In this document: positions 21,601 through 48,900 of the stretch, one piece after another | How the letters are laid out: the number at the start of each line of letters is the position of its first letter | Position numbering within the stretch: position 1 is the stretch's first letter | Origin: Styela clava | Lineage: Eukaryota | Length of the DNA stretch: 64,000 nt | Reading direction: 5' to 3' | Assembly: GCF_964204865.1 (NCBI RefSeq) | Contig: NC_135263.1 | Coordinates: 11,284,001 to 11,348,000, forward strand | Translations under genes and position numbers: made by a program | The notes under the pieces: generated by a model | Seen by the model: the letters and a program-made list of their open reading frames with translations, nothing else | Databases searched by the model: none | Told to the model about the DNA's origin: nothing

Positions 21601-21686
21601 ACATTTGGTTCTTTCGGTACCCTCAGTTGTCCTTCGGTCTTGTCCCAGTTTGCTGCAACAAGAAGCAGCACTGACAACCACAACAT
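635..21686 (-). CDS. Laminin subunit alpha (alpha3/alpha5-like), gene B, tandem paralogue; 3' end unresolved
   Basis: Exons: 21686-21569 (signal peptide [12 protein letters not shown]), 21339-21080, 20795-20559, 20493-20323, 20245-20151, 19671-19556, 19294-19085, 18718-18584, 18381-18244, 17663-17491, 17396-17294, 17151-17031, 16490-16271, 16188-16045, 15970-15768, 15362-15206, 15010-14890, 14234-14115, 13921-13735, 13576-13294, 13224-13061, 12448-12281, 11962-11751, 11384-11257, 10762-10625, 10086-9961, 9639-9440, 8634-8478, 8127-7985, 7427-7157, 6452-6359, 6147-5956, 5588-5428, 4916-4778, 3978-3811, 3243-3040, 2548-2372, 2115-1978, 1559-1408, 787-635. Most exon lengths equal those of gene A or differ by multiples of 3, and no frameshift was seen. 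Confidence 0.92.
1801..1887. repeat. Tandem acatttgcaccc units, same family as 19686-19918 (one arm only)
   Basis: About five copies of an (ac)atttgcaccc-like unit, mostly at about 15-bp spacing. Confidence 0.6.
2667..2890 (-). mobile_element. Possible tRNA-derived SINE in a gene B intron
   Basis: The minus strand has an A-box-like GGTTGGCGCATCGTG near 2868-2882 and a B-box GTTCGAATCC at 2810-2801 in a GC-richer island. No complete cloverleaf is evident. Confidence 0.45.
14414..14537. mobile_element. Short hairpin MITE-like element in a gene B intron
   Basis: 33-bp arms agtatgtgcaccaagatggcgcacaacctgaac (14432-14464) and gttcaggttgtgcgccatcttggtgcgcatact (14487-14519) with one mismatch, plus looser outer arms aaaattcggggctc and gagctccaaatttt. 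Confidence 0.7.
19686..19918. mobile_element. Foldback/MITE-like element with internally repetitive inverted ends
   Basis: The left end has tandem units of about 15 bp (acatttgaaccc-like). The right end has the reverse complement (gggtgcaaatgta, gggttcaaatgta). An aaccctaaccc run lies in the middle. Confidence 0.65.
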
Positions 21687-24520: not shown

Positions 24521-24903
24521 CCAGACAGGCCCGAAAATTAACAATTTGAATATATATGAGTGATCGCAGCCCCAACTGACGGTACCTTATAATAGTTTAC
24601 TAGATTAAGTTGAGGCCGGTTTTGTATGATTTTTCATTTTATTCGTGTCTTGGCTTGGTGGGCAACAAATAAAACGCGGTGGGTCACAAAGGGCCAGTGG
24701 TTCGCCATCCCAGACAGGCCCGGAATTAACCATTTGAATATATGTGAGTGATCGCAGCCCCAACTGACGGTACCTTATAATAGTTTAGTTTACTAGATTT
24801 AGTTGAGGCCGGTTTTGTATGATTTTTCCTTCTATTCGTGTCTTGGCTTGGTGGGCAACGAATAAAACGCGGTGGATCACAAAGGGCCAGTGGTTCGCCA
24901 TCC
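24521..24903. repeat. Near-identical direct tandem duplication of about 190 bp
   Basis: Unit 1 (24521-24709) and unit 2 (24710-24903) both run ccagacaggccc...gatcgcagccccaactgacggtacc...cacaaagggccagtggttcgccatcc. Confidence 0.9.
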
Positions 24904-25025
24904 CTCCACCTAAAAAAAAGTTTTATGCACAAAAGGACTGCTGTCTTGTTTGATACCCATACTGAACTACAATCCGAAGCAGAAGTAAACTTGAATCAAG
25001 AAAACCAAATAGTATTGAGATTAGG

Positions 25026-25031
25026 TTTATT
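25026..25031 (-). terminator. Putative poly(A) signal for the membrane isoform of gene A
   Basis: AATAAA on the minus strand about 270 nt after the stop at 25299. The hexamer is common in AT-rich DNA. Confidence 0.4.
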
Positions 25032-25298
25032 AGAAATCACTGACAACGAAAGATATCATCGCAGGGCCAACTTAACAAACATACTGTAAACCATAACAAA
25101 CTGTTAAAAAAACATATCCTTAGTTAATTAAAATGTGTCACATGTGGGAACGGCTCACAATACAACATTAAGACGCCTAGCGTTCGTAGGTAAATTATTA
25201 TCAGCCATCATATTTAATCACAAGAAGCGTGCTTAAGTACAAAACACATACATATAGTATCATACAAAATATTTACATTTCACAATATCATGGATCAA

Positions 25299-26114
25299 TT
25301 ACCAATCCATTTGAGCAACGCGCTGAGCTTGAACATCATTTAGAGGTGCTTGTTCCATTGGTGGAGGAGGTGGATTTGCTGGAACCGAGCCGGCCCCACC
25401 TGCAAACAAGCCCCCTTTCATGACCGCAGACACAACGGCAGCAAAAAGAACCACGCCTACAATAACTCCGATAATGATGAGAATGGCTGGTACAACACTG
25501 GAGGATGCCACATCATCTTCAGCAAAATTTTGAGCCTCTTCTTTTGGATCACCATAAGCCTCTGCTTTTAGTTCTCCAGGTACATCATCTTCGACTGATA
25601 TAGGTTCATCAGCTGTTTCAGTGTCGTCCGATTCTATGTCAGCGTTGCTCCCTACTTGTTCATTTTCGTTCTTTAAAGTTTCACCAACAACCTCTTTCGA
25701 ATTTTCCATTTCTATATCAACTTCTTTGATATCAATTACTTCATCACCCATGCCAGTTTCTTCTTCCAGAACAATCTCGACATTTTCTTCTTTGATTTTC
25801 AGTTTTGGATCTTCAAGTGGTGGATCAACAACAACTGTTTCTTTAAGTATGTCTATCGATACTTTCTCATTTGGTTTATCGTTGGCAACTGGTTTTTCAG
25901 AATTTATCATTGAATCATCGAGATTACCAATTTCTTTACTGCTAACATCTGCATTCTTATCCATCAGTCCTGTATCCGTATCATCAAGTTTTCCATCAGA
26001 TTTTAAAACCGCTTCATCAGGATCATCAGGTACATAGATGAGACGTGCATCTTCTATATCGAAAGTACGCGGCGGTCGTACTTCTTCAGTTTCAACCACT
26101 GGTTCCTCCACACC
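25299..26114 (-). CDS. Alternative terminal exon of gene A: acidic stalk, transmembrane helix and Pro-rich cytoplasmic tail
   Basis: Acceptor ttttgaag|GGTGTGGAG at 26114 is phase 0 and in the frame of ORF 25299-26162. It matches the phase-0 internal donor GATGAG|gtacca at 27954. The exon encodes about 205 aa of D/E/V/K-rich sequence, then VVPAILIIIGVIVGVVLFAAVVSAVM (about 25419-25496), then KGGLFAGGAGSVPANPPPPPMEQAPLNDVQAQRVAQMDW*. It has no ATG-led signal peptide of its own. Confidence 0.8.
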   Translation of the reverse strand, partial: GVEEPVVETEEVRPPRTFDIEDARLIYVPDDPDEAVLKSDGKLDDTDTGLMDKNADVSSKEIGNLDDSMINSEKPVANDKPNEKVSIDILKETVVVDPPLEDPKLKIKEENVEIVLEEETGMGDEVIDIKEVDIEMENSKEVVGETLKNENEQVGSNADIESDDTETADEPISVEDDVPGELKAEAYGDPKEEAQNFAEDDVASSSVVPAILIIIGVIVGVVLFAAVVSAVMKGGLFAGGAGSVPANPPPPPMEQAPLNDVQAQRVAQMDW

Positions 26115-27472
26115 CTTCAAAACATTGAAAAATAATTGTAAATCAAAAGCAAGATTTGACAATAACGAATAAATTATACCAAAATTTTCACTCTAATTAA
26201 TTACTCACGACATGGATGAAAAAATCAATTTTTTTTCATCCATTTAAATTGTGTGTGATTGAATCAAATCACAGTCGATCCGTATCAAGATGCAGTGAAT
26301 GAAGTCTTTTCTGAAGACGCATGATAGTAGACTTCAACATGCTTCCGAGCATGAAGCAGACAGAACCAGCGCTCTATTAGTTGCAAGCTTCAGCACATTA
26401 GTTTGAAGCGTAGATGATAGAAGCATGCACACATTATTAGTAAGTTGACAGCTGCGAAGTTGCATTGAAAATATGTATTCAACACCTCATGACCACAAAT
26501 TGTATTGTTTGATTCAATCCAGATAATTTTATTTCAAATTTCTAATTGATAATTGAAAAAGCACACACAAAATTGATGAAATTTGGCAAATGAATTTGAA
26601 ATAATTTACAAATTCAAAACACTGGGCGACGAATTATAAAGTAAATAAACAAATCGCTGATGCTAGAATCGAAAATATCAATTCTTAATATCAGGGCAAA
26701 CTTTAAAAAATGAAAAATTATTTGAATTTTTATGGGTCATGTAAAAATCCCTAAGATAAAAGTTAACACGAGATGTATCCAGTGAATACTAAAGCTACAG
26801 AGAATACTAAAACAAAGCAAAACAGAACTACTTATGCTGATCGAGAAGGCTAAAAAGGAATATATACAAATGGGAATGTGCTTCAATACCATGGTAAGCA
26901 AAAGGACAAGAGCTACATTTACATAGTTTAAAAATGCTGGACGTTTAAGTACAATCGGAGTTGTGTCCAAAAGTTTAAAAAAAAAACAAGATCGTTCCAG
27001 AAAAGTGATTTATAAAAGATAGAATTTGCAAAACAGTTCACAATTTTTTCGGTCCTATTCGGAATGTACATTTTTGTGCACAACATGAATATTATCAAAA
27101 GAATCAATCAATGATATCAATAGTGGAATATCAAATAACCTTAAAAATGCCTGATCAAGTATACCATGTATAACCATATCATCAAGATGTGATTGATCTA
27201 CTGCTAACATTAATAATATCGCACTATACTACTACATTTCTTTGGATTCTAACATCTAGCAGGCTGGATATGTTAATCGATATACATATGCATTCATTTA
27301 GTGTCACCCATATTTAAATGTTTTGTTAAAACACCATCATGTGTTGCAATGAACTTCAAATATATAGGGAACACTGTTTTGACATGAAGCAAGAATACCT
27401 TAGTCAAATTTTTAATTTATGATGTAACAATATCATAATTTAGAAACCCTTGTCGCATATTAAAACAGTGTA

Positions 27473-27478
27473 TTTATT
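27473..27478 (-). terminator. Putative intronic poly(A) signal for the secreted isoform of gene A
   Basis: AATAAA on the minus strand about 465 nt after the stop at 27942, inside the 1.8-kb intron before the TM exon. Confidence 0.3.
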
Positions 27479-27941
27479 TTGATGAAAGCACTGACATCAC
27501 CAGTAATCAAAGTTAGCAAAATTAGTAAAAAATTATGATATTTCAACCCATCAATAAATTTCTACCTATTAGGAATATATAATATCTACCTAAAAGACAA
27601 TATGCAGTCTAACAAGATGATGAAATACACTGATATTAGTAAGCAAAAGAATGTTATTTCTACACACGAAATCAAAAGTCGATTTATAAGCCAGCCAGGA
27701 ATGATTCATGTGGCAGATTTTGTAATCAAGCAATATTTTAATATGATAAAAACACACACAATTACAGAAATAAAAATGAGGCAACATTTTTGTTTCCAAA
27801 ACATGGTAATTGTGAAATTTCGTGCAAGCGCAATCCCATTAGATTAATGAGTCTTCAATCAAAGTTATGGCGATGTGATGCTATCTTATTCAATTGAATA
27901 AGAATGTGACATCTGCAAATTTAATTTTGTGCAGCGGTGTC

Positions 27942-30900
27942 TCATTTTGGTACCTCATCTGGTGGCACAATATCTGGTACTACAGTTGCTGCCAGTGGAG
28001 TAGGTTCAGGTTCTCTTGCTAGTCCTTCCATATTTTCAACATTGGGATAATTGTCTGCTATGCTAATAAATCCCTCATCTTTGGCGTCAATGGGCGGAAT
28101 GTCCTAAATAAAGAAATAATAAGAATTATTTTATTGATTAAGAGTATGTGAGCCGTGACGATAATTCATTTCTATCATTTATAAAAAAAGGTTTCATACA
28201 TCTCCATCACATCCAGGGGTGACTCCGATTCTTTCGTAAGCTTCGTAAATATTGAAAGTATATCTTCTATGGAAAGATAAGTCTCTGATGCATCCGCGGT
28301 AGTTTGTATTGATGTTCTTTACATATTGACTAAATCTGTAAAAAAAATATGAAGTTTAACGTTGAATAATGATTTACTTTTCCCACAAAAATTCGAATAA
28401 AAAATCAGTTTAACTTACTCTTGTTTGATGTCATTTCTATGAATTCCGCCAAACCAGACATCGCCTTGAATATTTGGTGACCAATCCGTGAAAGTCATGT
28501 TTATGCTGAGCCTGTTGTGAATTGTGATGAAACATTTGTTAATACAAAAAATGATGTTGGTTCACTAAATTATGTTTAATTGCATTTTATATTAGAGCGT
28601 TTTACTTTTTCAAACTCTTGTCAAAATATATTGTTGTGTAGTTTCTCATTTGCATTCTGGACTTATAATAATAGGTACAAAGTTCTAATCTAAAACAAGC
28701 CAAGATTCTTATTGAACTGACACTGTATATGTCCTCATAATCAAATAATAACGAGCCCAAACTTATACTTACTCAGTGTTGAGGACCAAAGCAATCATCT
28801 TTACGTTTCTGCCAACATTAACTATTCCGATCTTCACGTTGAAAGCTTGTGCAATGGTGGATACATCTGGGTATGTGTCAGTGCTGACTCCTTCTTTAGG
28901 TTCATCCCAACCAAAATTGCAAGACAAATGCAATTTTCCATCTCTAATTTCCAAAGCAAAGAATTGATCCTAAAATGATAATGAGAAGTAGAAAATTTTA
29001 TTCACTGTATTCAAATGTGACATTTGGCAATTGTTATTACTGTGAATATAAAAATAACATACCACGCTCTGTCCGACGAAAAGAAGCAGGCCATCATGTT
29101 GTTTAGTCAAAAATTTGAAGCTAACAAAGCTGATTCCAGTAGTATCTGCATAGGAATTTAGTTGGCGAAGTTGTGTTTCACTTGCTCGAATGTAACTGTC
29201 AACACCTCGGAAACGCCAATATCTATTGCTAGTTGAAACGCTGAGTGGTGATTTGCGTCTGAAATGAAAAAAAGAGCATAAATTAGGGAAATGAAAGATA
29301 CTAGGATAAAAAATAAAAACATATGTTTAGTATCCATAATGTCAATCAAGCAACAAAAAATTAGATTTCAAAATAAGCAAACAGATATCGGATTTGACCG
29401 TTCAGACCAAGAAAATCTAAAACAATTTATTCTTGATGAGCGTCCAGTCCTAGAAAAAGTTTTGACTAAATCTTGATTCATGTTTCCATAACTAAATACG
29501 TTATCCTCTCTTAGTATAACAAGGTTTGTTACAACTCACCCTTCTCCAGCACAGGTTTGACCAGGCTTTGGACCATTGTATGAAACAAAATTCCAGAGTC
29601 CAACACTTTCATCATTAACTTTAACACCCTCAATACATCCAGTCATTTGATTGTTTTGTATTTTTCCTGGTAGCTGTTAGTAGAAGTATATATGTTAGAG
29701 ATTTGGTATGATTGATAATTATCTAGTTTAGCATTAAATTCATTTCCTCATAGTAATATTGAAATACAAATATCTTTATGAATATCTTTAGGTAGCTAAT
29801 TGAAACCATTTCAAATTTATATCTTACATAATTTCTTACAAAAATTCTGAATAATATACCGGTAAGTGAAAATTTGTCAGAAGATATAAAAAAAATTCTA
29901 ATCACCTCCAATCACGAATACGCTTATTGAAAAGTCATTTCATGACTATATAAATATATTCATGCATTTATAAATTTAAAATAAAACTACATGCAACTAC
30001 ACCATTTAATTTAATGACATCTGAATTTCCAGTTCAGTATAGTACTAGGACAAATTAATGACTTTGATAAAACTATAAATAGTTTTGTACCGGCATGGGT
30101 GGCAAACCACCAACAACAAATGGCGTTGTCTCCCTTGGTAGAGACGATTCTATTTCAGCTGCATCTGTTTTTCCAGTCTGGACTTTACTAGTTATGGCAC
30201 CAGAATTAAACAAGTCTCCACGCCCTTCTATAGGATTAGGGTAAAATACTTCCAGTGATGCATCATTTCCATTTCTGCAGAGAAAATGATGAAATGAGAA
30301 TATAACACAAGATGACATTGTGAAGGTGAAAAATGCACCTATGTTCAGTATATCATAAAATGTATTATGGTATCTCTGTTTGTCATGATGTTGCACGTGT
30401 ACACTGTTAAACATAACCATGTTTTATGTGTGCCATTTAGTCTTGTTCATAGTACAACTCAGAAACTGAAACTGCTTTAGTAATGTTACTTGTTTTGTAA
30501 AGAAGTCATTTCCATCATAACTCCCAGAGTTAACTTTAGCACAAAAAACTAGCTTTGCACTAGATATTTGCTCAGATGGGTGCCTTTGTTGTTATGTACA
30601 GATGAGTATATAGGAGAAGATAAGTCAAGTGTGGAAATGAAGATTTGATTAAGATAACTGCTTTGAAAGAGATTAATAGGATGACAAAAAAATGCAGATA
30701 GCTTGAGAAGAATGATCATCCATATTTCAAAATTTGATGCTCACAGCTGATGACGCTTGTACATGTAAACAAACTGTTTATACAATGACATATGTGATGA
30801 TGAGATGTCAGTGTTTTAAACATTACTGTTGTTTGGCTGGTTTCGAAGGGGTGTCATAGTTCTACCGTTTCAGGCAGTTTTTGATACATCAAAACACGCC

Positions 30901-33900
30901 AACCCATCATAAAATCACCAAAACTTAAATTATGATGATGACTTCTGCTACACTATGAAATATTGCTTCATTTCTGATATCTTCAACATTGTGAGTGCAC
31001 AAATGCTGTGCAACTTCACTCATTCACCAAATCCACTCATATCACCATACAACTTTCACCATTACATACCACTGGCAATGGATTGCCCCCTAACAAGAAG
31101 ATGGTCTTGTGGGAGACCAGCCTTTCTGGTGCACCAGGCAAATAATCCGCCCTTGTTCTTCTATGGCGGCCTCTACGATATCCATCAAGGTTGAAAACTT
31201 GTAGTGATCCAATCTTGTTTTTTTTTCTTTGTTTATTAAAATGTGTTTATGTGTTATGTGTTCGTACAAACGTGGATAAGTTTAAAACTACGAGGTAACA
31301 AGATTTTATATAATTAAATGATGCACCTTCAAATAATAACCCAATTTTATTTCTGATTTTCCAGCGAATTACACAGATTCAGAGAATTAGTGAAAATATA
31401 AAACTTTGACACTATTACTTTATTCAACTTCACATACCTTTCTATGACAATACGATGCCACGTTTCATCATTGATTGCTGGATGTGTACCAATAATTTCA
31501 CCAACACCAGATCCAACTTTATAATAATAGTGTACTTTGCCTCCAATAGTTTCCAAAGCGATGTAATCCCCAGAAGCAGTCTGTAAACAAGTAGGAGTGA
31601 TATAACACCATTTCTTATATAAAATATCTTTATGCTTTATATATATATATATATTATACATACTGAAGCATCTCCTAAGTATAAGAGAGAATTGTCTGGT
31701 GATTTTGAGATGTTGACGTACATTTCAATCTTGATGTTGTCACTGAGATCAAATGACTGTGGTGGGATGTGAACTTGTGCATATTCAGGCTTGGCATCTG
31801 CAGCAGCAAGAGGTACATGCTTGAATTGCATTGATACCTTGACCTGTAAAACAGAATGTTCTATGTTGAGATTCACAATGAAAAACAGAAGCTTCAGAGA
31901 GTAAAATTTCATTGAGTCAATAAAAAATTTTGCCTCATAATTTTGTTATCCAAGTCGTCATTCAAAATTATGCAAGGTACCAGTTTTTAACTTACGCTGT
32001 CAGCACGGCTTCTTGACAATTCAATCTTCTTTCTTATTTCACCTATTTTTTCATCCAATGCAAGATCTTTAGGAAGTAAAGCGATTCTAGCAGCACGTCG
32101 ATTAAGCTCTTCCACTTGTGCGTTCATATCAGCAATTTGGTCGGGTAGATCAGCCACTAAAATGACAATTTAAAATGTGAATCAAACGGGTGACAAAATC
32201 AAATCCTATTTAACATAACTAATGCATTTGTAATATGATTAGAAAACTTGGAAAGCGCCCATTACCGATATGAAAACTAATCCTAAATTCCTCTCCGTTA
32301 ACAAAATGGTCTTTTAGCATGCCATATGCTTTTTCTCAACTACAAACTTATTCAATCTGTGTCATTTAATAGCTAACTGTTACTTTTGCATGGGGAACTG
32401 AGAAACAGAGCCAATCTGACACTTACATATGTCTTGAACATCAGTTAGCTCTTGATTAAGTGGAATATTTGGATCAGGAGCTTGGTCAATCTTGTCTTGT
32501 AATTGTTGTGCTGCTCTCAAAGCATCATCAGCAATATCTGAAGCTGCTGCTGCATCTTCTTTTGTTTTTTGTATTTTGGCATCAATATCACCTGAATGAA
32601 AAAAAAATGAGTATAGGCATTTGAAGAAACATGTATGTGTGCTGAATAAATCTGAAAGCTTTTGTGAATGTTACATCTTTCATACATAGAAAATATCACA
32701 ATATGATATTTTCTTACCATGATCTAAAGTAGTAGCACCATCTTTCACTGCTTCCATTCTTTTAGAGAGATCTTTTGCCAAAGAATCCATTTCCTGAGAA
32801 CTCTTCTTGGCAGCCTATTAAATATATTGAATATATGTCTATGTCAAATCTTGTTTCATTAATTGAATGTTAAACAGCATGTACCATCATATATATCATT
32901 CAACTTACATTAAGATCATTCTGAAGATCACCAATTTTGGTATTGAGAATATCTTGTACTTCATTGAGAAGTTTCCCACTGGCAACATTTGCTTCATCAG
33001 CTGCTTTACCTAAATTCTTTTCAGCTACATCGTCTCTTGCTTCTGTAGCATCCTACGAGAATAATACAAATTTTTTACCACAAAATTCTTCATAATTTTC
33101 CTTGTAAAAATATGTTAAAAGTTGGTATTATTGCTGGTCATTTTGTATTTCATCAGATATAAATTTAAACTTACCAAATCTGCCTTGTCAGCTGCCTCTC
33201 GTGCATTTTCCATAACATTGATAATATTCTGATATCTGTTTGCAGCTTCGACTGCTCTAACATTACGAGGATCATTCTTTGTTTCTTCAACCAGTTGTGA
33301 AAGCATATCGGCATCATTCTTCAACATGTTAGCTTTTTCAATAGACTATAGAATAAAGAAATTTTGATCAATAATCAACAAGGATGCATAAAGACATCAA
33401 AACTAAGCAAGTTTAGCTGAAAACCAGCGAAAAGGACTGCTGAATATTATTGACTAAAACTGCATCTTGTGTAAAATTGAGACTAGTCAGGTAAATTTTG
33501 ATTTCGAAAGCAGGCATAAATATGGGTTACGTTTCACTGACCGACTAAATCACTAGATATTTGAGAACACTTTATTACTGGCAAGTAATGCAAAAAACTA
33601 ACCATATTGACAAGTTCCTCCATTCCTTCTAATCCCACAACATAAGCATCATAAACAGGTTGAAGTTGATCAATAGCTTCGAGTAAAGCATCGCTGTCCA
33701 ACACACCAGGTTCATCAATACCACCTCCATTTAACACATTCTGTGCATCACCAATTATTTGATTGATTTCTTCAAATTCAACAGTAATTCCTGTAAAAAA
33801 ACAAAATATTGATGTGATATTCAACCAACTAAATCAAAACCCGCCATGAAATAACAAATTAGACACTTACTGTTAATGGCATCTCTGCCTGCTGTGAGTG

Positions 33901-36900
33901 CTTTACTATTGGCGGCATTCAATGTTGCTACTTCTGTTACAGTTTTAATAGCATCATTCAAATGAGCTCTTAATTCTTTCATTTTGGTCAATTTGTCACC
34001 GAGATCTTGACTAACGTTTCCAACTCTTTGATCCAAATCCTCGGAAGGCAGAGTGAAGTTGATGTTTACTAGTCCAAATACTGAATAAAGAAAAATATTT
34101 CATATGAAAAAAAAAATGATTCATGTTTGACACTGAAAAATAAATTAATCTTTTTCTATGAAATAGCAAGTATATTTGTAAGCATTCGTTAGATCATATT
34201 CATACTTACAATAAATAACAATATTTATATCTGTTTTACTTACATTCTTCTGCTTGAGCTAGTTCAGCATCAGCGACCTTCTTCATAGGTTTAAATACTC
34301 TCATCTTCATTCTTGTTAACAACATTTCAGCGTCATATAATTTTTGAAGATATTCGTCATTGTCTCCTGAAGCATCTTCCTCAAGCTAGAATTGTAGTAC
34401 GAAAATAAGTTAGATATAATCTTGAGTAAAAATTCTCACAGCAAACCACACAAATTTCAATAGAAAAATAAACAGTAAACAACTGCATGCAACTTATCTC
34501 CCCAAATCAATAAGGTAAAACCAAAACTGTGAAATTCAGTCAGTGCTTCGAACGATCTTTCAAATAAGCTTCAGTGTAAGAAATAGTGCTTTTGTAGCTA
34601 AGCTATGCCCATCATTTAATGAACGATCATAACGCTCATATAGCTAAAATTTTCCTGGTCTATCAACTTAGTATTATGGTGTTTGTTTGTACCACATGCA
34701 TGGATTCTCTCCTTAATTTTTTTTTTAAAGAGCCAACACAATGGATTCTATGCTCAAAACACAATTACAAAGAGTAATTAATTATTCAGAAATAAATGAT
34801 ATCTATTTTAATAATTAAATCCTTGTGACTTTATTTATAAAGCAACCCTATTGTGCTCCAAATAGACAACAAATAAAAACACACACAATAAATTCATTCA
34901 GATTCAAAACATTCACAAAACAAATGCTTGCAACATTCAGTTTTGCGAACCTCATAAGCTGATCCTTCTTCCATAAACATGTCTGGAATCTGGGGGTGAA
35001 TTTATTAATTATATTAGTGATTGAAGAAATGGAAAATGTTAGTAAAGAGTTGAATAGAAAGAAAAGATGGATAATGATTGAATAATTATCTGAATTATAC
35101 AATGAAGAAGATGGAGTAAATTAAAATATCTCATGTCAAATATGGTCAGAATATTCTGCAACTCTTTTCAAAAATTTAGTTGGAAATTACAAATTATGAT
35201 GAGAATCAATAAGTAAATGAAACAATGAGATTGACAATGCAAAATCATTATGATATCAAATTGTTATGTAAATGCAATTTTACTTTGAATATATCAAGTG
35301 TTCGATAAAACAAAATCATTATTACCTTTTCAAGAAGATCTTTTGAATCTGTTGAAAACCCACCGATTTCATCATTAATATCAGTGGCATTGGCATCTAA
35401 TCTTAACATTCTTCCACTAGTCTTTTCAATGCTTTCTTGAAGTGCCTCAGTTTTATTGCACATAGCAGCAACCTAGAAATGAAAGTGTTGAATACTCATA
35501 ATTTGCTTCAATATTCCAGGTATATTGATGTATTAATTCTTTAATAAAATATTAGGCTTTTGATTATATTTTGGACAGCATTGAGACAAGCGAGTAACTT
35601 GTTGAAGGGGTTTTTGTTACAGGTATTCTAATGATCACATCTATAATGTGCTATTACACAACTATTACATTTATCCATAAAAATTGATGAATGCAGTTAA
35701 GTTACATAATAATAAACTTGACACAAACAACAGAAATTATACAAATTACATGAACTGGTTACACTACTATATGGATTTTTGAATATCATGTGTGGAATTG
35801 TCGATTCCCATTTTTGATTACTCATTGCTTAAGAACTACTGTTCTTATTCGAAATAATATTATTAAAGTAAAATACAAAATAGCATATCTTTTGAGACTA
35901 TGTTATTTTAATTTAAAAGTACTACTTTTTTCAAATACTACCAGCTATAGAGCACAACTACAGTCTAAGCAAAATAAAGCAGCATGCAAGCACTCACTGC
36001 AAGTTCAGTTTTTCCTACAGCAGATTTAAGCGCAATGTAAGAGTCTTGTTCCTTGGAAGAAGAATCGACAATAGGTGCAGGTAAACCTGATGCCTCCTGG
36101 CAAGCAATTATATTAAGCAAAATTAGGCACTACATGCAAGCGGAATAATGTGATTGCAGCAAATAAAGGGTGTAAAAACTAAACTAATGCTTGTCCTAAT
36201 GTCTTAGAACAAATCTAAGAATGTAGGGATGTCATTATATAACCAAAAAAGCATATTCAAATCTTTTCAATCCTTTTGAATCAAAGCAAATTTGAATGCA
36301 AGCGACTTGCAAAAATATCAAACAATTGTTTTAGATGAAACATTGAAAATGCGCTAATCAAAATTGCAATTCAATGACTTGGAATCATTGCAAGACTGCT
36401 TAAATACTCTTTTTAACAACTATGAACTGAAGAATTATTACAACGAAAAGATGACCATAAGAGAAGAAATCGAAAATTCAAGTTAGTCTCTTATGTACAG
36501 TAATTATTATGTTCTTATATTGAACATAATCATAGTACTTCATAAAAAAAACTCAAAATAATCAAAACCAATCAAACTTTAGCAAATAAAATGAAAGCAT
36601 CTAATGAACAGAAAGCAGCAATGCATAGCGGCATTGTTTATCTAACAAAAAATATTAAATTAATATATTTCTATTTGCTACGACTGTAAATCTACACAAT
36701 AAAATCTTTGCTATATTAATCACAGCAAAGTAGTACTATGTTATCACCCAAAGCTACAATCCTACTAAATATGCTATAAGGAAATATTACCTCATCCTCT
36801 TCAGACATTATCATATCATTCAAATCATTAATTTCGGCATTCAAAAGCTTATCAGCATCATCACTAATGTCATTCATATGTTGTTCTGTCTCAGAAATAC

Positions 36901-39900
36901 GATCCTAAATAATAATATTTCAATTAGGAACAGTGCTATATAAAAACTTTGAGATAGAAAATTAATCATATGTATACGGTATCTTTCATTCAATATATCG
37001 AATATAACTTACTTCGACATCCTCAGAGCGGTCCGCGAAATCTTCAAGTCTTTTTGCTGCTGCAACTCCAACTGATACTTTTGACAACTTAAGACTGGCG
37101 CTAGCTACTTTTTCCGTCATTGGCTCAATGGTGTCAAGAAGATCATGTGTACAGGTGTCACAGCCTAAAAACATCCAAAATGTTCTTCAGTAATGTGGCA
37201 TATTGAAATAAGCCCTAACTTTTATAAGTAAATATGTATATACTCACTTTCACATTGAAGACCGCCTGGTGGTAGAATGTGACGTTCCAGTTTGCATTGG
37301 TCGCATTGAGGGCCAGTGATACCTGGTGGACATTTGCATTCGCCATTGACCGGATTACAATCTCCATTGTTTCGACAATTGCAGGCTAAAAATATATGAG
37401 AGTGTCAGACTTCCATGAACATTCATGTCAATTTTTTTTAATTATTTGCTGACAGAAGATTTTAGAGGAACAAGAAAAGATGAAACTTTGTGTTGAAAGT
37501 TTGAACTTCTCTTTGTTGCAGGTTTAGAAACCTTCGACAAATTTAAGTGCCGACTGGGTTGGAACATTGTTGAAATTTGGCACAGAGTGCTGATGGAAGT
37601 ATCAAAATGTAATAATTAATGCTGCTGTGGTTTTGTGGACATGTTGGAAAACATGGCAGAGATGGTAAAGGGAACTATTATATATAAAAATAGGGACATG
37701 TTGGAAATCAAGAAACAAGTTTAATTATTATTCATTTGTGGAAATAAAGCCTGTTGCACTCACGTTTGCATCCCATGGATGAGTAGTCCCAGTGCCCTGG
37801 TGCACATTTGTCACATTTCAGTCCGACAACATTTGGTGCACATTCACATGCTCCAGTCACAGTATCACACTCATTGTTTCTAGCACCAATCCCACAGCTG
37901 CAGTCTTGACAACCAATGCAGGAATCCAAATTGTAATATCCTATTAAAAAAAATGTCATGGTAAAAAAAAATCAGTTTATAAAATTTGTAATTGCAATTC
38001 TACGATGCTCGGTACTAACCTGGCTCACAACGGTTACATGAGATACCAATAACATGAGGCTTGCAAGCACAGAATCCATATGTATGATCACATTGCAGAG
38101 TACCACATTCATTGCATGGACATTTGGTACAGTTCTTGGCAATTTTGGCATCTCCAAAAAAGCCATCTGCGCATCTTTCACAGTATTTTCCACCAGTATT
38201 GTACAAGCAGTCTTTGCATTCACCTAGAATGAATGACAAAATTGTATCATATCATAAGTCTATATAACGGAGATTTAGAAAAAAACCGCATTATTTTGAA
38301 AGAAATATATAACTTACCACTTATCGGATTGCAAATTTCCATCACCAAGTTAAAATCAAGGTTTCCATGGCAATTGCACTGTTTACAATCTCCACCGATA
38401 ACTGATGGGTTTCCAAAATATCCGAGAGCACACTGGTCGCACTTTTCTCCTGTGTAACCAATCTGGCAGTGACAGACAACATCACCATCTGGAAAAATGT
38501 TATAAACATAAATTTTGGATCAGTAATCGGGACAAATTGACCAATAATAAACAAAATGACAATTTTCCTACCTTCATCATATTCACAAGACTCTGCGAAA
38601 TTTCCATCTTCTGATGGGAATGGACATGGACAAGGCTGGCAAGCATCTGGATCTCCAGTAGTTGCATCTCCAATGTATCCATCTTTACATTTTTCACAAT
38701 TTTCACCAGCCTATAATAAGTTATGTATAAAAATGAGCATTTTCTGCGTACAATATGGATGAGATAATTAATTTTGAACATCGCCATAAGAATAATATTT
38801 TGAGAAAAAAATTACCGTATTATGAAGACAATCCTTCTTGTCAATCAATTCACCATGTTCATCACAAGTTTCACAATGTCCATAACAATGGCACTCTGCA
38901 CAATAACCCAAATAAGGTCCACGATTTTCTCTAAAATGTCCACTGTCACACAATTGGCAAGACTCTCCAGTGTATCCTTAATAAAATTTAATTTTTTAAC
39001 TTGTGATTCCTACTAATAAATTAAAAACTGTCTTGAGTTGTTCTATTTTTTAAAAATGTACCTTTGGGGCAGCGGCATTCCTCAACGGTTGGTATAGTTG
39101 GACCTGATCCGAGTTCAGCATCATAATCAGTAGTTGACATACTAACATCCGAAAGCCTGACGATGGCTGCATCTGGATCATCAGTAGCATGGATACGCAA
39201 TTTTGACAAAGGACTAAGAACCATCATCATTTCTTCACGTTTCACTGGGTTTCCTACATTAAAAAATACATGAGTTTTATAACAGCTAAAATATTGAAAA
39301 ATAAATGAACAACTTAGTTGTATGTTATAGTATAGAAAATACTTACCAGTGCTTTGATGAACAAAATTTGATTCAGTCAAGTTGAGGAATACTGATTCTC
39401 CATTCTGTTTGTTTCTGTTTATCCAGCCAACAACCATACCATTGCCCTGAAGTAAAACACAATTGGTTAAATCAAAAGCACAAACAAAACTCAGTTTTAA
39501 TAGTTAGGTTTTAATATTATACAATACTAACCTCCAAAATGACTGTTGGATTTGGAGCAGTTAGAGGAGCAGGTTGATCTCCGGCGACCGAAACAAATGT
39601 ACCAGTGCTGTCTCCTCGTCCACCTTGTTCTGAAGTGGTAATGAAGTGTAAAACGCCACCATAGGATCCAATTTGGTCATTCAGATATGCTTTTGGTGCA
39701 GCCCAATACAAGTTGGTTCTGGCAGGTTCTTTAGCTCCTCCATTTTCATAGATATCCACGGTAAGAGTGTTACCATCACTCTGAATTTCTGGTGTATCTC
39801 TGTAATAATGTTTAAAAGATTTAGCAAGCTAAAAATTCTGATATAATAAAGGGATATATTGAGGCACATACGTTTTCAAATTCAAAAGCCGCCAGCCTTC

Positions 39901-42900
39901 CATATCAATAATTTCCTCCATGGGGTATCGAGTGCTGCTACATTCAACTGTGGCTCCAAAACAGAAGCATTTTGTGCATCCGAGAGGATTTTGTTCATTC
40001 AGATAGAAAGTACCCTGTGAACAGAAAAGTGATATTATTAATATTAACAATTCAATCATTAATATTTAGATGTGACAGGCTAAAATAACCCACCATTTTA
40101 CATCTATCACATTGTTGTCCTTCTACATTTTCTTTGCATAAACATTGTCCACTGGCTGGATCGCATGTTTCCGAGATGCTTCCACGTGTATCACAAACGC
40201 AAGGGCTACAATCAGGGAATCCAAAAAATCCTGCTTTACATTTGTCACATCTTAGTCCTTCAACATTTTCTCTGCATCTGCATTGACCATCATCCTTGCT
40301 ACATCCAAGGTCAGTTGCATTTTCTACCCCTTGAGAATGGCAATCGCATGCAACACATCCAGCAAGAGGATGGAAGGAATGTGTAAAAGGAAGGCATTGA
40401 TCACAAGATGGGGAAACAGTGTTGGGTGGACAGATGCAGTTTCCATTGATCTAAAGTAAATAGTACAGAAGTTTTAGAAAATATAATATTATGCAATATT
40501 TACAACAATTGGAAAGCAAATTTTACGATTTAAAAATGTATACATGATGTTCTAAGACCACATTTTCAATCTATATTTACACTACAGTTATTGAATCTTA
40601 CCTCATCACATAATGCACCATCACAATCGCACGGTTTGCAATCTGGGAATCCATAGAATCCTATCATACACCTGTCACATTTTCTTCCAATCACATTTGG
40701 CTTGCAAGGGCATTGACCACCATAGTCCTGAAATAGTAATGATAACTTGGTAAAAATACTGCTTGTTTTCCGGCTGTATTGATTCAGAGAAAATTACAAT
40801 TATTCACACTTACCTCACAATCTACATCTCCACCGCCAACTGTGCCAGCACCAGAGCAATCACATGGTAAAGCTCCATCATTGAAGTCCATAGTTAATGA
40901 GAACACTGCCTTGCGACAAAAGTCTGTTGGAGTTGTCGCAGAGTCAATCAATCCTTCAGTTCCCACTCCATAACATTCATCAAAGAATTTTCTTGAATGA
41001 TCAACTGGTTTTAAGTCAAGTTGATCAGCGTTATAAGATTCCTCTGGTATGGCAAGAATGTAATCCAACCAGAAAGCTTTATCTGTAAATTGAAATAGGA
41101 ATTTTGAAATTAAGATTTAGTAGTTATGACATTAATCTCAATGTTATTTATGGAAAAGTTCCATAATTTTTTCTATAGAATTTACTCTGTATTTAATTTA
41201 AAATTTCTTCTTCAGAGAAATCTTGATAGGCAAATGTTTTTTTCCTAGTCGTTTACCTGCTGGCACTTTAATTGTCATTGTTTGTGGTCGGTTGGTGATA
41301 TCAATAACCACAGCTCCATTGTTAGATATAACAACGCCTCTGCATCCATCTCCGCTTGGACAAAAGGTAACATTTGCAGTTCCTTCATGTGTAAGACCGC
41401 CATCAGAGATGATAATATTAGGTGAGAATGATACATGGTTGGGGTTGAAATAGTGAAGTAAAAATACATATCTGAAACAAGAAAATAATTAGATTGCTAG
41501 GTTAAAATGGTTTTGAGCTGAATGTATTGGTAATTAACTGAATACAGTTCTTTATATAATGTAAATAAATTCAATCATATCATATTTTGTATTGCCAATA
41601 TTTCATATTCAATGATATAATACTTTGAAATAACTTACCGGCCAGGATCAAGATCCATGTCAATCTCTATAGTGTTGTCTTCACCACCAACTAAGACAGT
41701 ATCAACTTCCCCAGTAGTTTCAGTAGGAGGAACAGAATCACCACCTCCTACTTCAATCTTGTGTCCAGTAGCAGAAGTTGGATAAGCCCAAGCAGTGCAT
41801 CTGTAAATATATCATTAAAACCAATTATAATTTGTGAGAAAATTTTCAGTTTTCCAATTTCTATTGAAGAAATTTTTTTCAAATTTATCATATAACAAAC
41901 TACAAATACATACTCATCAAATTCGGGTCCTTCTTTAGTGATGCACTTTCTTTTAGGTTCCACATATTCCATTGTCCATTTTTCATATGGAATTGCATGA
42001 ACACGACTCACATAAACAACATCACCAGCACCAACGCTCAGGTCCACTTGGATATTTGGGACAGAAATATCAAAGACCTAAAAAAGAAATGAAGACAATA
42101 AAGCATTGTACAGTGGTAAATATTCATTTTTAAAGGCTATACATACCATGACATCACTCAAAGGTGTGAGTGCAACTTGCCGACAAAGGAAAAGATACTC
42201 GCACGAGTAGATATTGAATTTCACATCAGAAAATGTGTTTCCTGCTAAATCTGTAACTGTGGCATCGACAGTTTTCATTCTGTCTCCAGTACTTGCATAT
42301 TCAAGAACAAGGACGTATTTTCCTGCGCTGTCTACATCATTCAAAGTCATGGACACTGTATGGTGATTATCACCTTTTTTGTTTCCATCAAGTAAAACCA
42401 TAGTTGGGTGTGCAGTTGTAGGAGAATCATGTCTAGAAAAATATATAAAAATCTTAAGTAACAGTATAATCTAACTCAATATTGTTGAATATAATTCTCT
42501 TAAACAATGACAACAGAATACCAGCAAATGTCAAATATACCGTAAATGAAACTATACAAATACGAACAACAACAATGACATATTGAATCTTGCATCAACA
42601 AGAAAACATTATATCATTCTATATATAAAATAATACATATAATATAATATAGAAATATGCACATCCATATTTTTGTATTTTACTTACTGTGCTTGCTCAG
42701 CGAAGGCCATGGCTGCAGCCTGAGGAGTTCCAGTGAGTGGTATGTGTGTGTACATGAGACAATCTTTTCCTGTTTGAGTTAGTGTTGGCTCACAAGGTTC
42801 TGTGATTTTAGCTTGAAGAATTCCCGGTTCATAGTATTCAGATGGCAGAAGAACAATGTAGTCAATGAGAAGTCCTGAAAAAATATAATGATATGGTTAA

Positions 42901-45900
42901 CAAAGCAAAACGAAATCCAAAAATTTATTACCAAGGATGTCATATAAAATAGGTAATTGTACACATGAATTATACTACAAACTAGCGAAAAGAAAAATAT
43001 TAATAGAAAAAACATTCAGTATTTATAACCAATCTATAATAGGTTGAATTATCGAAATCAGAGACAAAAAATGATTGATAGCAAATCAGTCCAAGACATA
43101 ATTTAAATACCAACCTGGTTCGCCTTCAATAATGATGTTCCATTCTCCACGATTAAGAACAAATACGCTGTTAGCAGTCATCAAAGCTGGACTTTGACTT
43201 GGTTCAAAATCAACAATAAATTTTTGCTCCGAACCTAAATTAGTAAGAAGAATTATTCACAAATGTTCATTTGCTATGGGGTTGAACAAAAATAATCATG
43301 GAAAGCACTCCACAAAGTGACAACAACATAAACATGCATTTTGTGATGAAACACCATAATTAATATTGAAATAAAATGAATGTAATTCTTCAATCAACGA
43401 CACCTAGACTTCTATTTTATTTAAATTTGATTATCTATTACCGTATATGGTCTTACCATCAGCTGTTACCGGTGAAAGAGTGACATTTGCTGAAGTTGTG
43501 CCATCGGGTTGAACGTAATAAAAGAGCACTCTGTACAGACCATAACTCTCCACATTGACTGGTACAATGATTTTACGCTGTGCCAAATCAAACATATGAC
43601 AACATGCAGTTTATTGTAATCATGCATTTATCCTAATGTACTAATAATATTCCTAAACTTATCTTGGGTCTATGAATCTGGGATACTGTCTTCATTGGAT
43701 GATGTGCAATATTTGTGCATCAAATATAAAACAAAAGACATGCAGAGAAAATTCAACTTAATACCATGCAGTATTTATGTTGTGTTGGAGGTCAAAAATA
43801 TGATTACCATTTACCAATCCGAGATGTCCAGAGAATTCAGTTTAAATATAATTTGGTATCAATAATTTTTGAATAAGATATTTTCGAAAATTTATATAAT
43901 CAGAATCAATGTTATATAAACATGTTTCGAATTTTCAAATTTTTCATCATATTTCCAATTTGTGATTAAATAAAACAGCTATGCAAAGCTGTAATGTCAT
44001 AAAATCAAAGTTGTTAGTAATGTGCTCTCATGCAAAACAAAATAGTCAAAAGTGTGTGGATGGACAGACGCATTAAAATAAACATTTCCATTTGCCATGG
44101 TTCGTGCACTGGAAACTCACAATTGGGGCATAGAGGTTCTGCGTCACTGTCATCATCAGTAGAAGTTTTCGGAACAAAGGAAATAGTGGAAGAAAGAACC
44201 CATGAATGAGGGTTGACATAGTACATCAGTATTTTATACAAGCTGTTCTGTGTTATAGTCAGATCCAACACAGCTTTTGGCTGAGCAAGAAATAGAGAGA
44301 TTGGTAAAATCAAAAGCCAATATGATTATCTAAATAACATATTGTGAAAGAACATAAAACAAAAAAGTAGAACCATGTTTCATATAATATACATTGTACT
44401 TTCACTAAAATTAATGCTATGAGAAGGAATAAAAATTCAACTTATGAAATGAATTTCGATAAAGAATTCAGAAATTAATTTTAAACTTGTTTATATTATG
44501 TATACATATACACTGGTGTAATATGCATAGTAAAATATTTATATTGTCAGTACATTTAAAACTATAAATTGTTATTTCTCAGAAAAATAAACAAATTTTA
44601 CTTTGAACTAAAATACTAAATTTACCAAGAAATATCACAGTAGCATGCTTTAGAGAAGTTATGGTTAAAAAAAACTCTATGAAAAACTTTGAAAGGTAAA
44701 TAGGAAAAAAGAAATAGATTTGTGAATATATTTCCCAAACAGAACAGATAGATGTAAAACAATTTAATACACATTTAATTGCACATTTATGAGGATTTTT
44801 GGGGGGATATTCTACCTTTACTAGATGTATATCATTAAATAGAGTATTTGGTCACATACTATTTTAGCTTTATTATGATATAAAAACTAATGACTGTTAC
44901 CTTATTTACATACTTTCTTATTGTTATCGAAATAGCTTTTAGCTGTTTATACAAAAGCACATACCTGGACAAGAGAAAATTCTCCATAACCTTTCATACT
45001 GAAAGCTGGAAAATGTTCTCGATTGAAACCAAAACGCAAGATTTGGTCTTCAGTTGTTTTGCCATCTTCAACCTCAAATCTATGCTGAAGTAGAGTTGGG
45101 TAGTAGTAGCCTTCAGCAACACTGAAATCAGTAAATAAATTAAAATTAATATAGTGAGAGTAGAGAAATATACACAAGTGATAACCTTTTATAAAATAAT
45201 ACCAATTAGTATCGTACCTATCACATTTTCTGCCTGTTACTCCTTCTTTACAACGACATTGCCCATCTACTGTGTCACAATCCTCTGTCATTGCACCACC
45301 AGCATCACACTGACATCCAGTACAACCAAAGTAATGGCTTTCCTCAAGTCCAAAAAATCCATCATCGCACTGAGAGCATCTTTGAGTGCATGTATAGGGT
45401 TTGCACCAGCAATCACCAAACTGAAACAAAAAAGATTTAATAAGTCCCATATTTTATGAGGTAAATGGCTATGCTATGCAGCTCCCTGTATGATAAAAAG
45501 TGGGCCTAAGACTGATCTCCATATTTGGTAACTTAATTAACGATGGCTCGTTAGCAGATATTCATTAGATTCACTTGTCATGGTCTATCATTGGTTAAAT
45601 TTTAGCAAACAATAAACAACTTACCTCTGTATCGCAGGCAGCAACACCATCGAGTGTTCCCTGGAGAAAGCAATTACAATCAACACATCCGAGTGTTAAG
45701 TTATAATGCAGGGGACTGCATTCATTACAATACTTTCCAACAACATTCTCTTTGCAGTCGCATTGGCCCTTAATTCAAAATAAGTGATTCAAATAACAGT
45801 TATCAAAATGTAACCTTAATTCCAACCACAATGTAAATATCACTTACGGTGGTGAAAGCAAGACAGACGCCTGGTACAACAGACTTGATCCCTCTTGGAT

Positions 45901-48900
45901 CACATTTACAGTCTTCACATCGAGGGAAGTTGAAGTAATCGGGTGCACATTGGTCACAACGACGTCCACCAATATATCGGAAGCAGGTACATTGGCCAGT
46001 CACCACATCACAAGTCGTTCGTTGAGAACCTTGTACGTCACAGTCACATGGGATGCAGTTCGGATAGCTATTGATAAAATATGACATCAATCATTAAAGT
46101 TAGTGGCGCTACATAAAGGCAAGCCCCTTGGGAAACGAATGAAATTCGAATCTCATTATTGAAGCTATGATGACCTTACCCCAGTAATACAGTTACCTGA
46201 CAATGGTACAAGTCTGGCTTATTGCTTATTTTCTGTTGGTAATTCATCATGTAAAATAGATGTGGTCGTACCACAAGATCACAAAAACTTCTAAATCGAA
46301 AAAAACTGATACTAGGTCTTACTTGTAATATTCTGGCGCACATTGTTCACATTTAGGTCCTTGAAAGTTAGGTTTGCATTGGCATTTTCCACTCTCCTGA
46401 TCACACATGGTACTTGCACTTCCAGGGCTTGAGCATTCACATTCTTAAAAGAGAATAAAACCATGATAAATTTTCTTCGAATTGCTATATATAAAAATAG
46501 AACCATGAAATACAATACCTTTGCATTGTGGGAAGTCGTAATAACCAGGTAAACAGCGATTGCATGATTCTCCAGTCACCAACTCAGTACAGAAACACTT
46601 TCCAGTATCAGGATCACAAATCTAAAAATAATGGGACATACTTAATGTAATATTCGTAATATTCTGACATTTACCATTTTACGGAAGATAAACTATTACT
46701 ACTTACATCTGAGGTAGTAAAAGCTGTGTAGCAAGCACATGTTTGACAAAGCGGATATTTGTAGTACCCTGCTGCACACTGGTCACAATATAATCCCCCG
46801 AATCCCTCATCACAAGTACACTGTCCGCTGTATGGGTCGCAAATATCGCTAATTGCTCCTTGACCAAGACAAGTGCAGGCTAAAAACACAAAATTAGTAA
46901 GCAATCAAATAAAATCACGCAATTTGATAGAAGTTGAAAAAGACTGAGCAATAGGCAATACATATATAGTTTAGCAGAATACATTGTCTTGAGTCATTGT
47001 ACACAGTCTTGAACTGCAATGCACACAACTTTAAATGAATTTGATCGTCATGAGAAAGATAATTAATAAAACTACTTACGTGTACAATCTGGGAAGTTAT
47101 AAAATCCAGCGGCACATTCACTGCAATATTTTCCAGCAAAATTGTACTTGCATGGACAAATATCATTCTCTGGCAAGCAGATTCCATCTCTGGTACCATT
47201 GTAAAAGCAGGGACAGACTAGAAAGTAGATTGCATCAATTAAATTGAGACAAAAAAACAGGCATTCAAATTTTTGTGCAAGAAAATAAAACAAAAACGTG
47301 AATGTGAAACGAGTGGTGTATATCAAACATATCACTTAAATTAAAATATACTTTTTCAGGTATAAATTTCAATCACCTTCCATGTACATTTCATCTTGAA
47401 GACATGCTTTATATTAACTTCCAAATACCCATATCTCAGAACAACTGATTAGGATTTTATTCAACATAAAATAACTTTTAAAAATTTTCATTTCCAAAAC
47501 CTTCCCAATTCAAACTTAAATATACAAGTAATAAGTGCTAAAAGATTGAAATTTCTGTGATAAACCACACCATGTGAACGAAAGTTTTTTATATGTGAAG
47601 CAACACCAGTCACTCCACCATTTATATTTACCATTATCTCCGAATTCTATCAAGAGAGAAAATAAAAATGTAATAAATTATTCTACTAAATGTATATGTA
47701 TTACTAAATGCACAAACAATCAGATGACTTACGTTCGCATTCTGGGAACATGTGATATCCAGGTGCACATTTATCACATCTGTCTCCTGCGTACTTGGGC
47801 TTACAGTAGCATCGTCCAGTCACTGGTTCGCATGTACCAACAGTGAATGCGCTATCACAATCACAAGCTAAAAAGTAAAAACAAAATAATTAGAAAATGT
47901 GAATGTGTGCACTTTACCATGCATACAAGCACAAGTGACTTTGTGTACAGGCAGGTTGCGTGACATGAATTTGAAGTGTAGGTGCTTTATCCTTGCTGAA
48001 ATTTCCCAAAATGAAACTACTTTTAAGGATAATTTTGTGTTCATCACTGAGTAAACATATATAGTTATATAATAATATCCATATCTATGTTATGCATAAG
48101 GTAATTGTTTTTCCCTTATCTGTGTCACTATATGTTTGCCGCTATATCTGAATCTGAGGAGTATGAAGTAGTAACTAACAATAGATAGGTAAACCCTTCC
48201 TAATCGTGGAGTAAATATATATAATGATCGTCCAAGCCGATGGAATATGAATATGATTTGATCTCGTTTCGACCACTAATTCACATGCTGGTGGATGAGA
48301 CGGACAATCTTAGTTACCCCATGGAGGACTCATTGCTCCTGGTAAAGGTCGATCAAAATCGATATCAGGGTGAGGATAACCTTCACGATCAAACCACCAG
48401 TCGATAGTATGGCCCTCACCACGACCCGTTGACTCAGTCGGAAATCTGTCTACCTTTCCAGGCCCAGGCCTCCATGGTTCATTGGAATCAAAATCAGGGG
48501 AGAATGTAATGGTAGAGCCAAAGGAAGCAGATGGTGTTGAAGTAGTTGGATATATAGCAATGTCATCTCGGGATTTAGGTCCAAAGAAGAGTAGCCAATC
48601 AGGAAAAGCTAAATTGTTAAATGCCTTGAGAATGGAGAAATCTAGCAGTAATATCAAGCCCAAGTAACTTTGGTTTGATCAGAATACATGGTTGTTCGTA
48701 AAATTTCCGTATGTGTTTATTCAGGCCTTAAAATTGGTATTCATAATTCAAACACAATGGTATTTACATAGTTATAATATTTTATGTTTGCCCTATTACA
48801 TTGTTGACATTTCCAAATAAAAGTCCTGAGTTCAAATAAAAAATATATTAAGGTTGATTTAACATATATTCCGTTTAATATTATCTTACTTGAGCTGTGG

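Follow-up and report, generated by a model that had tools for sequence, protein, structure and literature searches.

A laminin alpha chain with two LG modules and a predicted membrane anchor in the tunicate Styela clava

Laminins are regarded as secreted matrix proteins, which cells hold through receptors. A locus of the tunicate Styela clava encodes a laminin alpha chain that may be held in another way. The window analysed here is a stretch of 64,000 nucleotides (NCBI RefSeq assembly GCF_964204865.1, contig NC_135263.1, positions 11,284,001 to 11,348,000; coordinates below are those of the window), in which two laminin alpha genes are arranged head to tail, both on the minus strand. One of them, gene A, spans 53057..25010 (-), from a signal peptide and an LN domain near 53057 to its end near 25010, and is laminin alpha-5-like (alpha3/4/5-type). 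An original prediction made from this DNA held that its chain ends after LG2, with LG3 to LG5 absent and both canonical receptor sites lost, in keeping with a replacement by a transmembrane (TM) anchor and by RGD and polybasic loops. Taken as a whole, our results are best explained if gene A encodes a two-LG laminin alpha chain with a TM anchor, i.e., a type I tethered chain, resulting from a partition of isoforms after gene duplication, a reading to which we give a probability of roughly three in four.

The window sequence was queried exon by exon, while the full-length protein used is the public RefSeq entry XP_039265221.2 ("laminin subunit alpha-5-like isoform X2 [Styela clava]", 3466 amino acids; hereafter P0004), which matches the window without mismatch from 53057 to 25302 (100%) over 59 exons forming one intact open frame. 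When LG2 exon 2 was searched with phmmer against 1.84 billion representative sequences, P0004 and a spurious repeat protein (P0005) were the only matches. In Pfam, P0004 contains Laminin_N (239.7 bits), 19 EGF_laminin (LE) stretches, Laminin_B (77.3 bits) and a coiled coil, in which Laminin_I scores above its cut-off (52.7 bits) and Laminin_II (residues 2625-2732) slightly below its own (30.8 bits for a cut-off of 33). As the original prediction had stated, only two LG modules follow the coiled coil: Pfam finds two LG stretches in P0004 versus five in the protein of the neighbouring gene B (P0032), and the peptides quoted as the ends of LG1 and LG2 were located. Gene A has the LN, LE and L4 domains, the coiled coil and the alpha5 descent of a laminin alpha chain; it departs from such chains by having two LG modules instead of five in tandem, and a predicted TM helix where they are secreted without an anchor. 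Nor does it have the intact LG1-3 cloverleaf of integrin-binding laminins, LG3 being represented by a degenerate first exon only. The LG1 exons lie at 31840-29541 and the LG2 exons at 29258-28199 (-), and, taken exon by exon, LG1 exon 2 reaches 33.9 bits in Pfam (above the cut-off) and LG2 exon 2 14 bits (below it). The exons of this region are the following (splice joints are written as last/first exon base of this minus-strand gene):

31993..32154, minus strand: last coiled-coil exon (end of domain II), amino acids 2672-2725 of P0004; weak Pfam Laminin_II match on the exon, exact mapping.
31664..31840, minus strand: LG1 exon 1, amino acids 2726-2784; exact mapping of P0004, 41% identity to LG1 exon 1 of gene B.
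31437..31580, minus strand: LG1 exon 2, amino acids 2785-2832, core of the LG fold; matched by Laminin_G_2.
31040..31246, minus strand (bounds of the open frame): alternative LG1 exon 3, polybasic version; open frame, RefSeq isoform X3.
30091..30273, minus strand: LG1 exon 3, RGD (Arg-Gly-Asp) version, amino acids 2833-2893; exact mapping, homologous to the gene B exon at this place.
29541..29674, minus strand: LG1 exon 4, ending in ..GQTCAGEG; RNA joint 29540/29258, loose end at 29674, 64% identity to gene B.
29062..29258, minus strand: LG2 exon 1; RNA joints 29540/29258 and 29062/28968, 44% identity to the gene B exon.
28772..28968, minus strand: LG2 exon 2, residues 3004-3069 of P0004 (100% match); RNA joints, sub-threshold Pfam LG match.
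28419..28510, minus strand: LG2 exon 3; RNA joints 28772/28510 and 28419/28335, 69% identity to the gene B exon.
28199..28335, minus strand: LG2 exon 4; RNA joints 28419/28335 and 28199/28102, 52% identity to the gene B exon.

The RefSeq isoforms of gene A differ in the choice of LG1 exon 3, which is the polybasic version in X3 and the RGD version in X1, X2 and X4-X6, while gene B offers no such choice, its one exon here resembling the RGD version but lacking RGD (GDIFSGGG). Compensation for the lost receptor sites by the RGD or polybasic loop, as proposed in the original prediction, remains a conjecture.

That LG3-5 are truly absent from gene A and from its transcripts is borne out by several searches, all of which agree with the earlier claim that no LG-like exon lies between 27942 and gene B. 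A six-frame Pfam scan for LG modules across the whole genome (377 Mb) gave a single match in the window (31428-31574) and none between 28.2 kb and gene B, the remaining matches on chromosome 18 being exons of gene B; the six-frame Laminin_G check proposed along with the original prediction thus returned no LG exon in the downstream region. In tblastn, all the open frames of gene B were used as queries, and the last coiled-coil exon and the LG1 and LG2 exons of gene A were matched singly, at 39-69% identity, while the LG3-5 exons of gene B had no match in 21000-28197. Finally, a profile hidden Markov model of LG3-5 was built from nine laminin alpha chains; it recovered all 12 exons of gene B, with E values from 1e-33 to 9e-8, a favourable control given that gene B is among the nine, and found nothing better than E 6.7 on either strand of 21000-28200. 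Moreover, the mRNA of gene A ends 3.3 kb before gene B and therefore leaves no room for LG3-5.

What follows LG2 was established from assembled contigs of three runs from three studies (runs X1, X2 and X8, not to be confused with isoform names) and of a DNA run (X10), placed on 23700-29699. The first three runs are RNA, since GT..AG joints are present in them and missing in X10. Their joints are 29540/29258, 29062/28968, 28772/28510, 28419/28335, 28199/28102 and 27954/26114, so that every junction from the boundary between LG1 and LG2 to the last exon is backed by RNA contigs. The last of these joints, found in X1, X2 and X8 and absent from X10, uses a donor at GAG/gtacca, 9 nucleotides before an in-frame TGA (27945-27943), and enters an 813-nucleotide exon in frame (..VPPDE/GVEEPVV..), exactly as in P0004. 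The earlier description of a Pro/acidic tail followed by a stop was accordingly right about the exon and the TGA, which are both present, and wrong about the end of the chain, the stop being bypassed in spliced mRNA and used only when the intron is retained. The end of the gene reads as follows:

27954..28102, minus strand: Pro/acidic exon (50 amino acids, 3146-3195), positional homologue of LG3 exon 1; in-register alignment.
27943..27945, minus strand: in-frame TGA, preceded by ..PPDEVPK, used only when the last intron is retained; sequence and unspliced RNA contigs, e.g., X1 at 26706-27982.
26115..27953, minus strand: last intron (GT..AG); joint 27954/26114 in three RNA runs.
25488..26114, minus strand: acidic Pro-rich stalk, first part of the last coding exon; open frame, composition, no Pfam family.
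25419..25487, minus strand: predicted transmembrane helix AILIIIGVIVGVVLFAAVVSAVM, amino acids 3405-3427; hydropathy, same helix in 9 other sequences.
25302..25418, minus strand: predicted cytoplasmic tail of 39 amino acids with C-terminus EQAPLNDVQAQRVAQMDW; conservation of the C-terminal motif.
25010..25301, minus strand: stop codon (25301-25299), 3' untranslated region, polyA signal AATAAA (25031-25026) and polyA site (about 25010); RNA contigs and sequence.

The joint to the last exon bears out the claim that a TM anchor replaces LG3-5: the exon encoding the predicted helix, together with its conserved tail, takes the place of these modules, and each of the six RefSeq isoforms of the gene has the TM tail as its end. 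The helix has a 19-residue Kyte-Doolittle mean of 3.3, the maximum of the protein, the signal peptide coming second with 1.65. It is preceded by a stalk of about 250 amino acids; the stalk and tail exon (amino acids 3147-3400) contain 16% Glu, 13% Asp and 9% Pro, for a net charge of -54. Among ten aligned sequences, the C-terminal motif PL..Q.Q..AQ..W, which occupies the last 17 or so residues, is near-invariant, and this conserved, presumably cytoplasmic end points to an intracellular partner. The TM exon matches no Pfam family and has no second copy genome-wide, nor is it found in the 40 kb of gene B. Used as a query, it retrieved three short open reading frame fragments (P0001-P0003) that share its helix and C-terminus, alignment being confined to the last 25-30% of the exon. 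Downstream of the stop, polyadenylation occurs after about 290 nucleotides, as indicated by a loose end of 26 nucleotides of polyT at 25010 (X2), the RNA contigs finishing at 25015 and 25121.

Between LG2 and the stalk, the Pro/acidic exon aligns in register with the first exon of LG3 in gene B, Ciona, Clavelina and others (an 11-residue stretch of it standing against DYINIASGLSN). A profile of LG3 exon 1 gives it 4.3 bits, a score matched by 2 of 2000 shuffles, while BLASTP yields no alignment between it and LG3 exon 1 of gene B, and the broad LG3-5 profile does not match it. We read this exon as a probable decayed LG3 exon 1 rather than as a new addition. The exon is still LG-like in the species whose five-LG isoform also uses it, and would have drifted to a Pro/acidic linker in gene A, which makes no LG3.

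The comparison with other tunicates, which had been proposed as a check, gave the same form with two LG modules and a TM end in Ciona, Clavelina, Phallusia and JGI tunicates, so that the loss is not a one-off. Pfam counts two LG stretches, and the TM tail is again found, in Phallusia mammillata A0A6F9DIX3 (3362 amino acids) and in the JGI sequences P0037 and P0038 (3318 and 3349 amino acids), as well as in Ciona XP_026696571/2, Clavelina XP_076800374 and JGI P0184. In three taxa, a cluster look-up places five-LG and short isoforms in one cluster at 90% identity: X1-X9 (3752-3786 amino acids) with X10 and X11 (3385 and 3373) in Ciona intestinalis, X1-X5 with X6 (3345) in Clavelina lepadiformis, and a form of 3776 with forms of 3344-3381 in a JGI tunicate. 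In each of the three, the TM and five-LG isoforms are identical as far as LG3 exon 1 extends (..GTILNFRDTE in Ciona), and part with the residue that follows. One model of Clavelina, CAK8683599.1 (P0164), has its stop three residues past this branch point (..KETEVEM, then stop) and is the equivalent of a read-through. In the alignments, gene A fits this tunicate pattern, with LG2, LG3 exon 1, acidic stalk, TM helix and a C-terminus resembling ..PLNDVQAQRxAQMDW. Judging from these protein models, the form with two LG modules and a TM end is a conserved tunicate alternative isoform, which in Styela has become a separate gene after tandem duplication. Such models can be found in RefSeq and UniProt, where they are automatic predictions under the name "laminin subunit alpha-5(-like)", while a full-text literature search found no paper on a membrane-anchored or transmembrane laminin chain, or on the two-LG TM isoform of Ciona or Styela.

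The other half of this partition is gene B, the tandem paralogue 3.3 kb downstream. It opens at 21686, where its signal peptide and LN exon are nearly identical to those of gene A, and leaves the window at its low end; the next 40 kb beyond the window (L002) contain its coiled coil, five LG modules and a stop at L002:1125. Its RefSeq protein is XP_039265769 (P0032/P0168; 3801-3808 amino acids), with five Laminin_G_2 stretches, and all of its isoforms are five-LG. Gene B shares with gene A the exon structure, 60% overall identity and an exon-by-exon match over LG1 and LG2, and differs from it by the presence of LG3-LG5 and the lack of a TM exon. Between the two genes, identity amounts to 68% for the short arm, 48% for the coiled coil and 52% for LG1-2, versus 60%, 33% and 38%, respectively, between gene A and the TM form of Phallusia. 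In a maximum likelihood tree (IQ-TREE, quick search) of 18 chains and 3399 columns, Styela A and B are sisters (SH-aLRT, i.e., Shimodaira-Hasegawa-like approximate likelihood ratio test: 100), the TM and five-LG isoforms of each species are adjacent with near-zero branches, and all tunicates form one clade (100), itself sister to the vertebrate alpha5 clade (99). Most simply read, these results point to a single gene with two alternative 3' ends in the ancestor of tunicates; after the tandem duplication in the Styela lineage, A would have lost LG3-5 and B the TM exon. Gene conversion was also considered as the cause of the likeness between A and B, and is not needed: a lineage-specific duplication suffices to explain the tree, because the TM and five-LG forms are isoforms of one gene elsewhere.

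From a functional perspective, the chain of gene A would enter the endoplasmic reticulum in type I orientation and leave all of its laminin portion extracellular, a topology that is predicted because of the order of its domains and its signal peptide. It would then join beta and gamma chains through its coiled coil, such assembly being expected of an intact coiled coil, which the canonical isoform of other tunicates shares. The resulting trimer would still have the LN domain with which to polymerise, while being tethered to the membrane of the producing cell by the alpha chain's own helix, so that covalent anchorage would stand in place of anchorage through LG1-3 and integrin, and through LG4-5 and dystroglycan or sulfatide. 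The conserved cytoplasmic tail would link it to a cytoplasmic partner, and a minor intron-retaining transcript may give a short secreted form with two LG modules. In published work, LG1-3 must be intact for integrin to bind (PMC2755686), and LG4-5 is where alpha-dystroglycan binds (PMC4582122); from these requirements, a loss of canonical receptor binding in gene A is a reasonable inference. Going further, we may be dealing with a true integral-membrane laminin, whose trimer would seed a basement membrane without a receptor and would signal, or link to the cytoskeleton, via ..PLNDVQAQRxAQMDW, perhaps as a substitute for a weakened dystroglycan-matriglycan axis; this extension is tentative, and we give it somewhat less than even odds. 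By way of context, the dystroglycan of tunicates has diverged strongly and has no LARGE site (PMC4582122), and neither POMGnT2 nor FKRP was found in Urochordata (PMC8478517).

The RNA of the last intron suggests a possible further product. Unspliced contigs run across the donor at 27954 in X1, X2 and X8 alike and extend through the intron to about 26500; an AATAAA stands there on the gene strand (26533-26528), and one contig finishes at 26503, so that there may be an intronic alternative 3' end, yielding a short secreted two-LG form with ..PPDEVPK as its C-terminus. One could go as far as to take such a truncated secreted chain, produced by intron retention or by shedding at the stalk, for the main product, the TM helix serving only for transient anchoring or trafficking; the Clavelina model that ends at the same splice point would then be its counterpart. 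Yet the spliced joint is likewise present in all three runs, the TM end is found in six of the six RefSeq isoforms, and the helix and, above all, the cytoplasmic C-terminus are strongly conserved in distant tunicates, which argues for an intracellular function. Contigs show neither ends nor levels of transcripts, and their depths cannot rank the isoforms; altogether, we hold a mainly secreted product to be unlikely. Much less credible is the view that gene A is a decaying duplicate, whose TM ending would be functionless transcriptional or annotation noise. It could draw on the remnant of LG3 exon 1, now a low-complexity Pro/acidic stretch, and on the fast-evolving stalk, which leaves the last 25-30% of its exon as the only part to align; it is at odds with the intact open frame of the 59 exons, with expression in three studies, with an identity to gene B in LG1-2 (52%) that is close to the figure for the coiled coil, and with a TM tail motif kept in at least seven sources, including species that have it as an alternative isoform. 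As to an assembly artefact, in which LG3-5 would have been lost through a deletion or collapse near 28 kb, we found no support for it, and its probability is next to negligible. The depth check called for by the original prediction showed no misassembly near 28 kb in either DNA or RNA contigs: those of the DNA run tile 24625-29699 without differences, collinear with the assembly and at an even depth of about 50-60, and, even though the DNA runs placed may come from the assembly's own sample, the RNA contigs of the three other studies, from other individuals with their own single-nucleotide polymorphisms, are collinear too. Moreover, the polyA start lies at 25010, and the same architecture recurs in other species.

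The reading that we prefer, a two-LG chain tethered by its own helix, has several points to contend with nonetheless. Membrane insertion, trimer assembly and surface display are predictions drawn from the sequence alone, and cleavage of the stalk could release the ectodomain. The RNA reaching into the last intron means that the truncated secreted form may be substantial, and the RNA support consists of assembled contigs, in which the LN end and the TM end are not linked within one molecule. The TM isoforms of Ciona and Clavelina are known from protein models. Finally, the similarity of the Pro/acidic exon to LG3 exon 1 is weak, so that the proposed homology is mainly positional.

Among known systems, the closest to gene A is laminin alpha5 with its tunicate counterpart, the alpha3,4,5-laminin (Ciona savignyi A9YY72, 'chongmague'), with which it has LN, LE, L4a/L4b, coiled-coil I/II, LG1 and LG2 in common. 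Gene A is 52% identical to the Ciona chain and falls inside the tunicate clade sister to vertebrate alpha5; it differs from alpha5-type laminins by its two LG modules instead of five, and in that the C-terminus, free and secreted in those chains, is here a predicted type I TM helix followed by a cytoplasmic tail. A parallel for the choice of ends is the immunoglobulin mu heavy chain, whose secreted and membrane products come from one gene via alternative 3' exons and polyA sites. The likeness lies in the Ciona and Clavelina isoforms, which branch once LG3 exon 1 is passed, and in the possible read-through form in Styela, while the family is unrelated and the choice in Styela is largely fixed by gene duplication. 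Membrane-anchored matrix proteins also exist, i.e., TM-agrin, the transmembrane collagens XIII/XVII/XXIII/XXV, netrin-G with its glycosylphosphatidylinositol (GPI) anchor, and usherin, and gene A resembles them in that matrix- or laminin-type modules are tethered to the producing cell. To our knowledge, no laminin chain with the coiled coil of a heterotrimer is among them, and most are type II or GPI-anchored, whereas gene A is predicted to be type I with a C-terminal helix.

Should our reading hold, the first integral-membrane laminin would be this self-anchored alpha chain, conserved in sea squirts that are distant from one another; it would provide a natural test of how far the assembly of basement membranes depends on receptor anchorage, a question that is also behind the engineered linker proteins for laminin-deficient muscular dystrophy. 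The laminin alpha3/4/5 gene of Ciona is needed for notochord boundary formation. According to the models above, this gene would encode two very different products, and mutants or knock-downs probably hit both. The Styela locus would be a clean case of two isoforms divided between tandem duplicates, with the LG3 exon decayed in A and the TM exon lost from B.

A few other features of the two genes are worth recording. Both paralogues have an RGD in L4b (Laminin_B), at 39520-39828 in gene A (residue 1659 of P0004) and at 7118-7486 in gene B (-), which is distinct from the RGD loop of LG1. The other differences among the RefSeq isoforms of gene A lie at 43113-44280, 34951-34989 and 35995-36096 (-): X4 has an alternative L4a exon, while coiled-coil mini-exons are skipped in X5 (without a 13-amino-acid exon) and in X6 (without a 33-amino-acid exon, EASGLPAP..). 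In gene B, long polybasic runs are found in LG3 and in the LG3-LG4 linker (L002:6375-6827 and 5405-5701, -), namely KRRRKRRLRRKRPK and KKRNGKRRGG..RNKKKSGNR, and they resemble furin-type processing sites such as those that vertebrate alpha3/4/5 chains are known to have between LG3 and LG4. Finally, the intergenic stretch between A and B (23700-24904) contains high-copy repeats, with a DNA word depth of 5,000-50,000 at 23700-24499 versus about 55 for single-copy sequence, and includes an element of about 190 nucleotides in two tandem copies (24536-24711 and 24724-24904) that are 89-96% identical.

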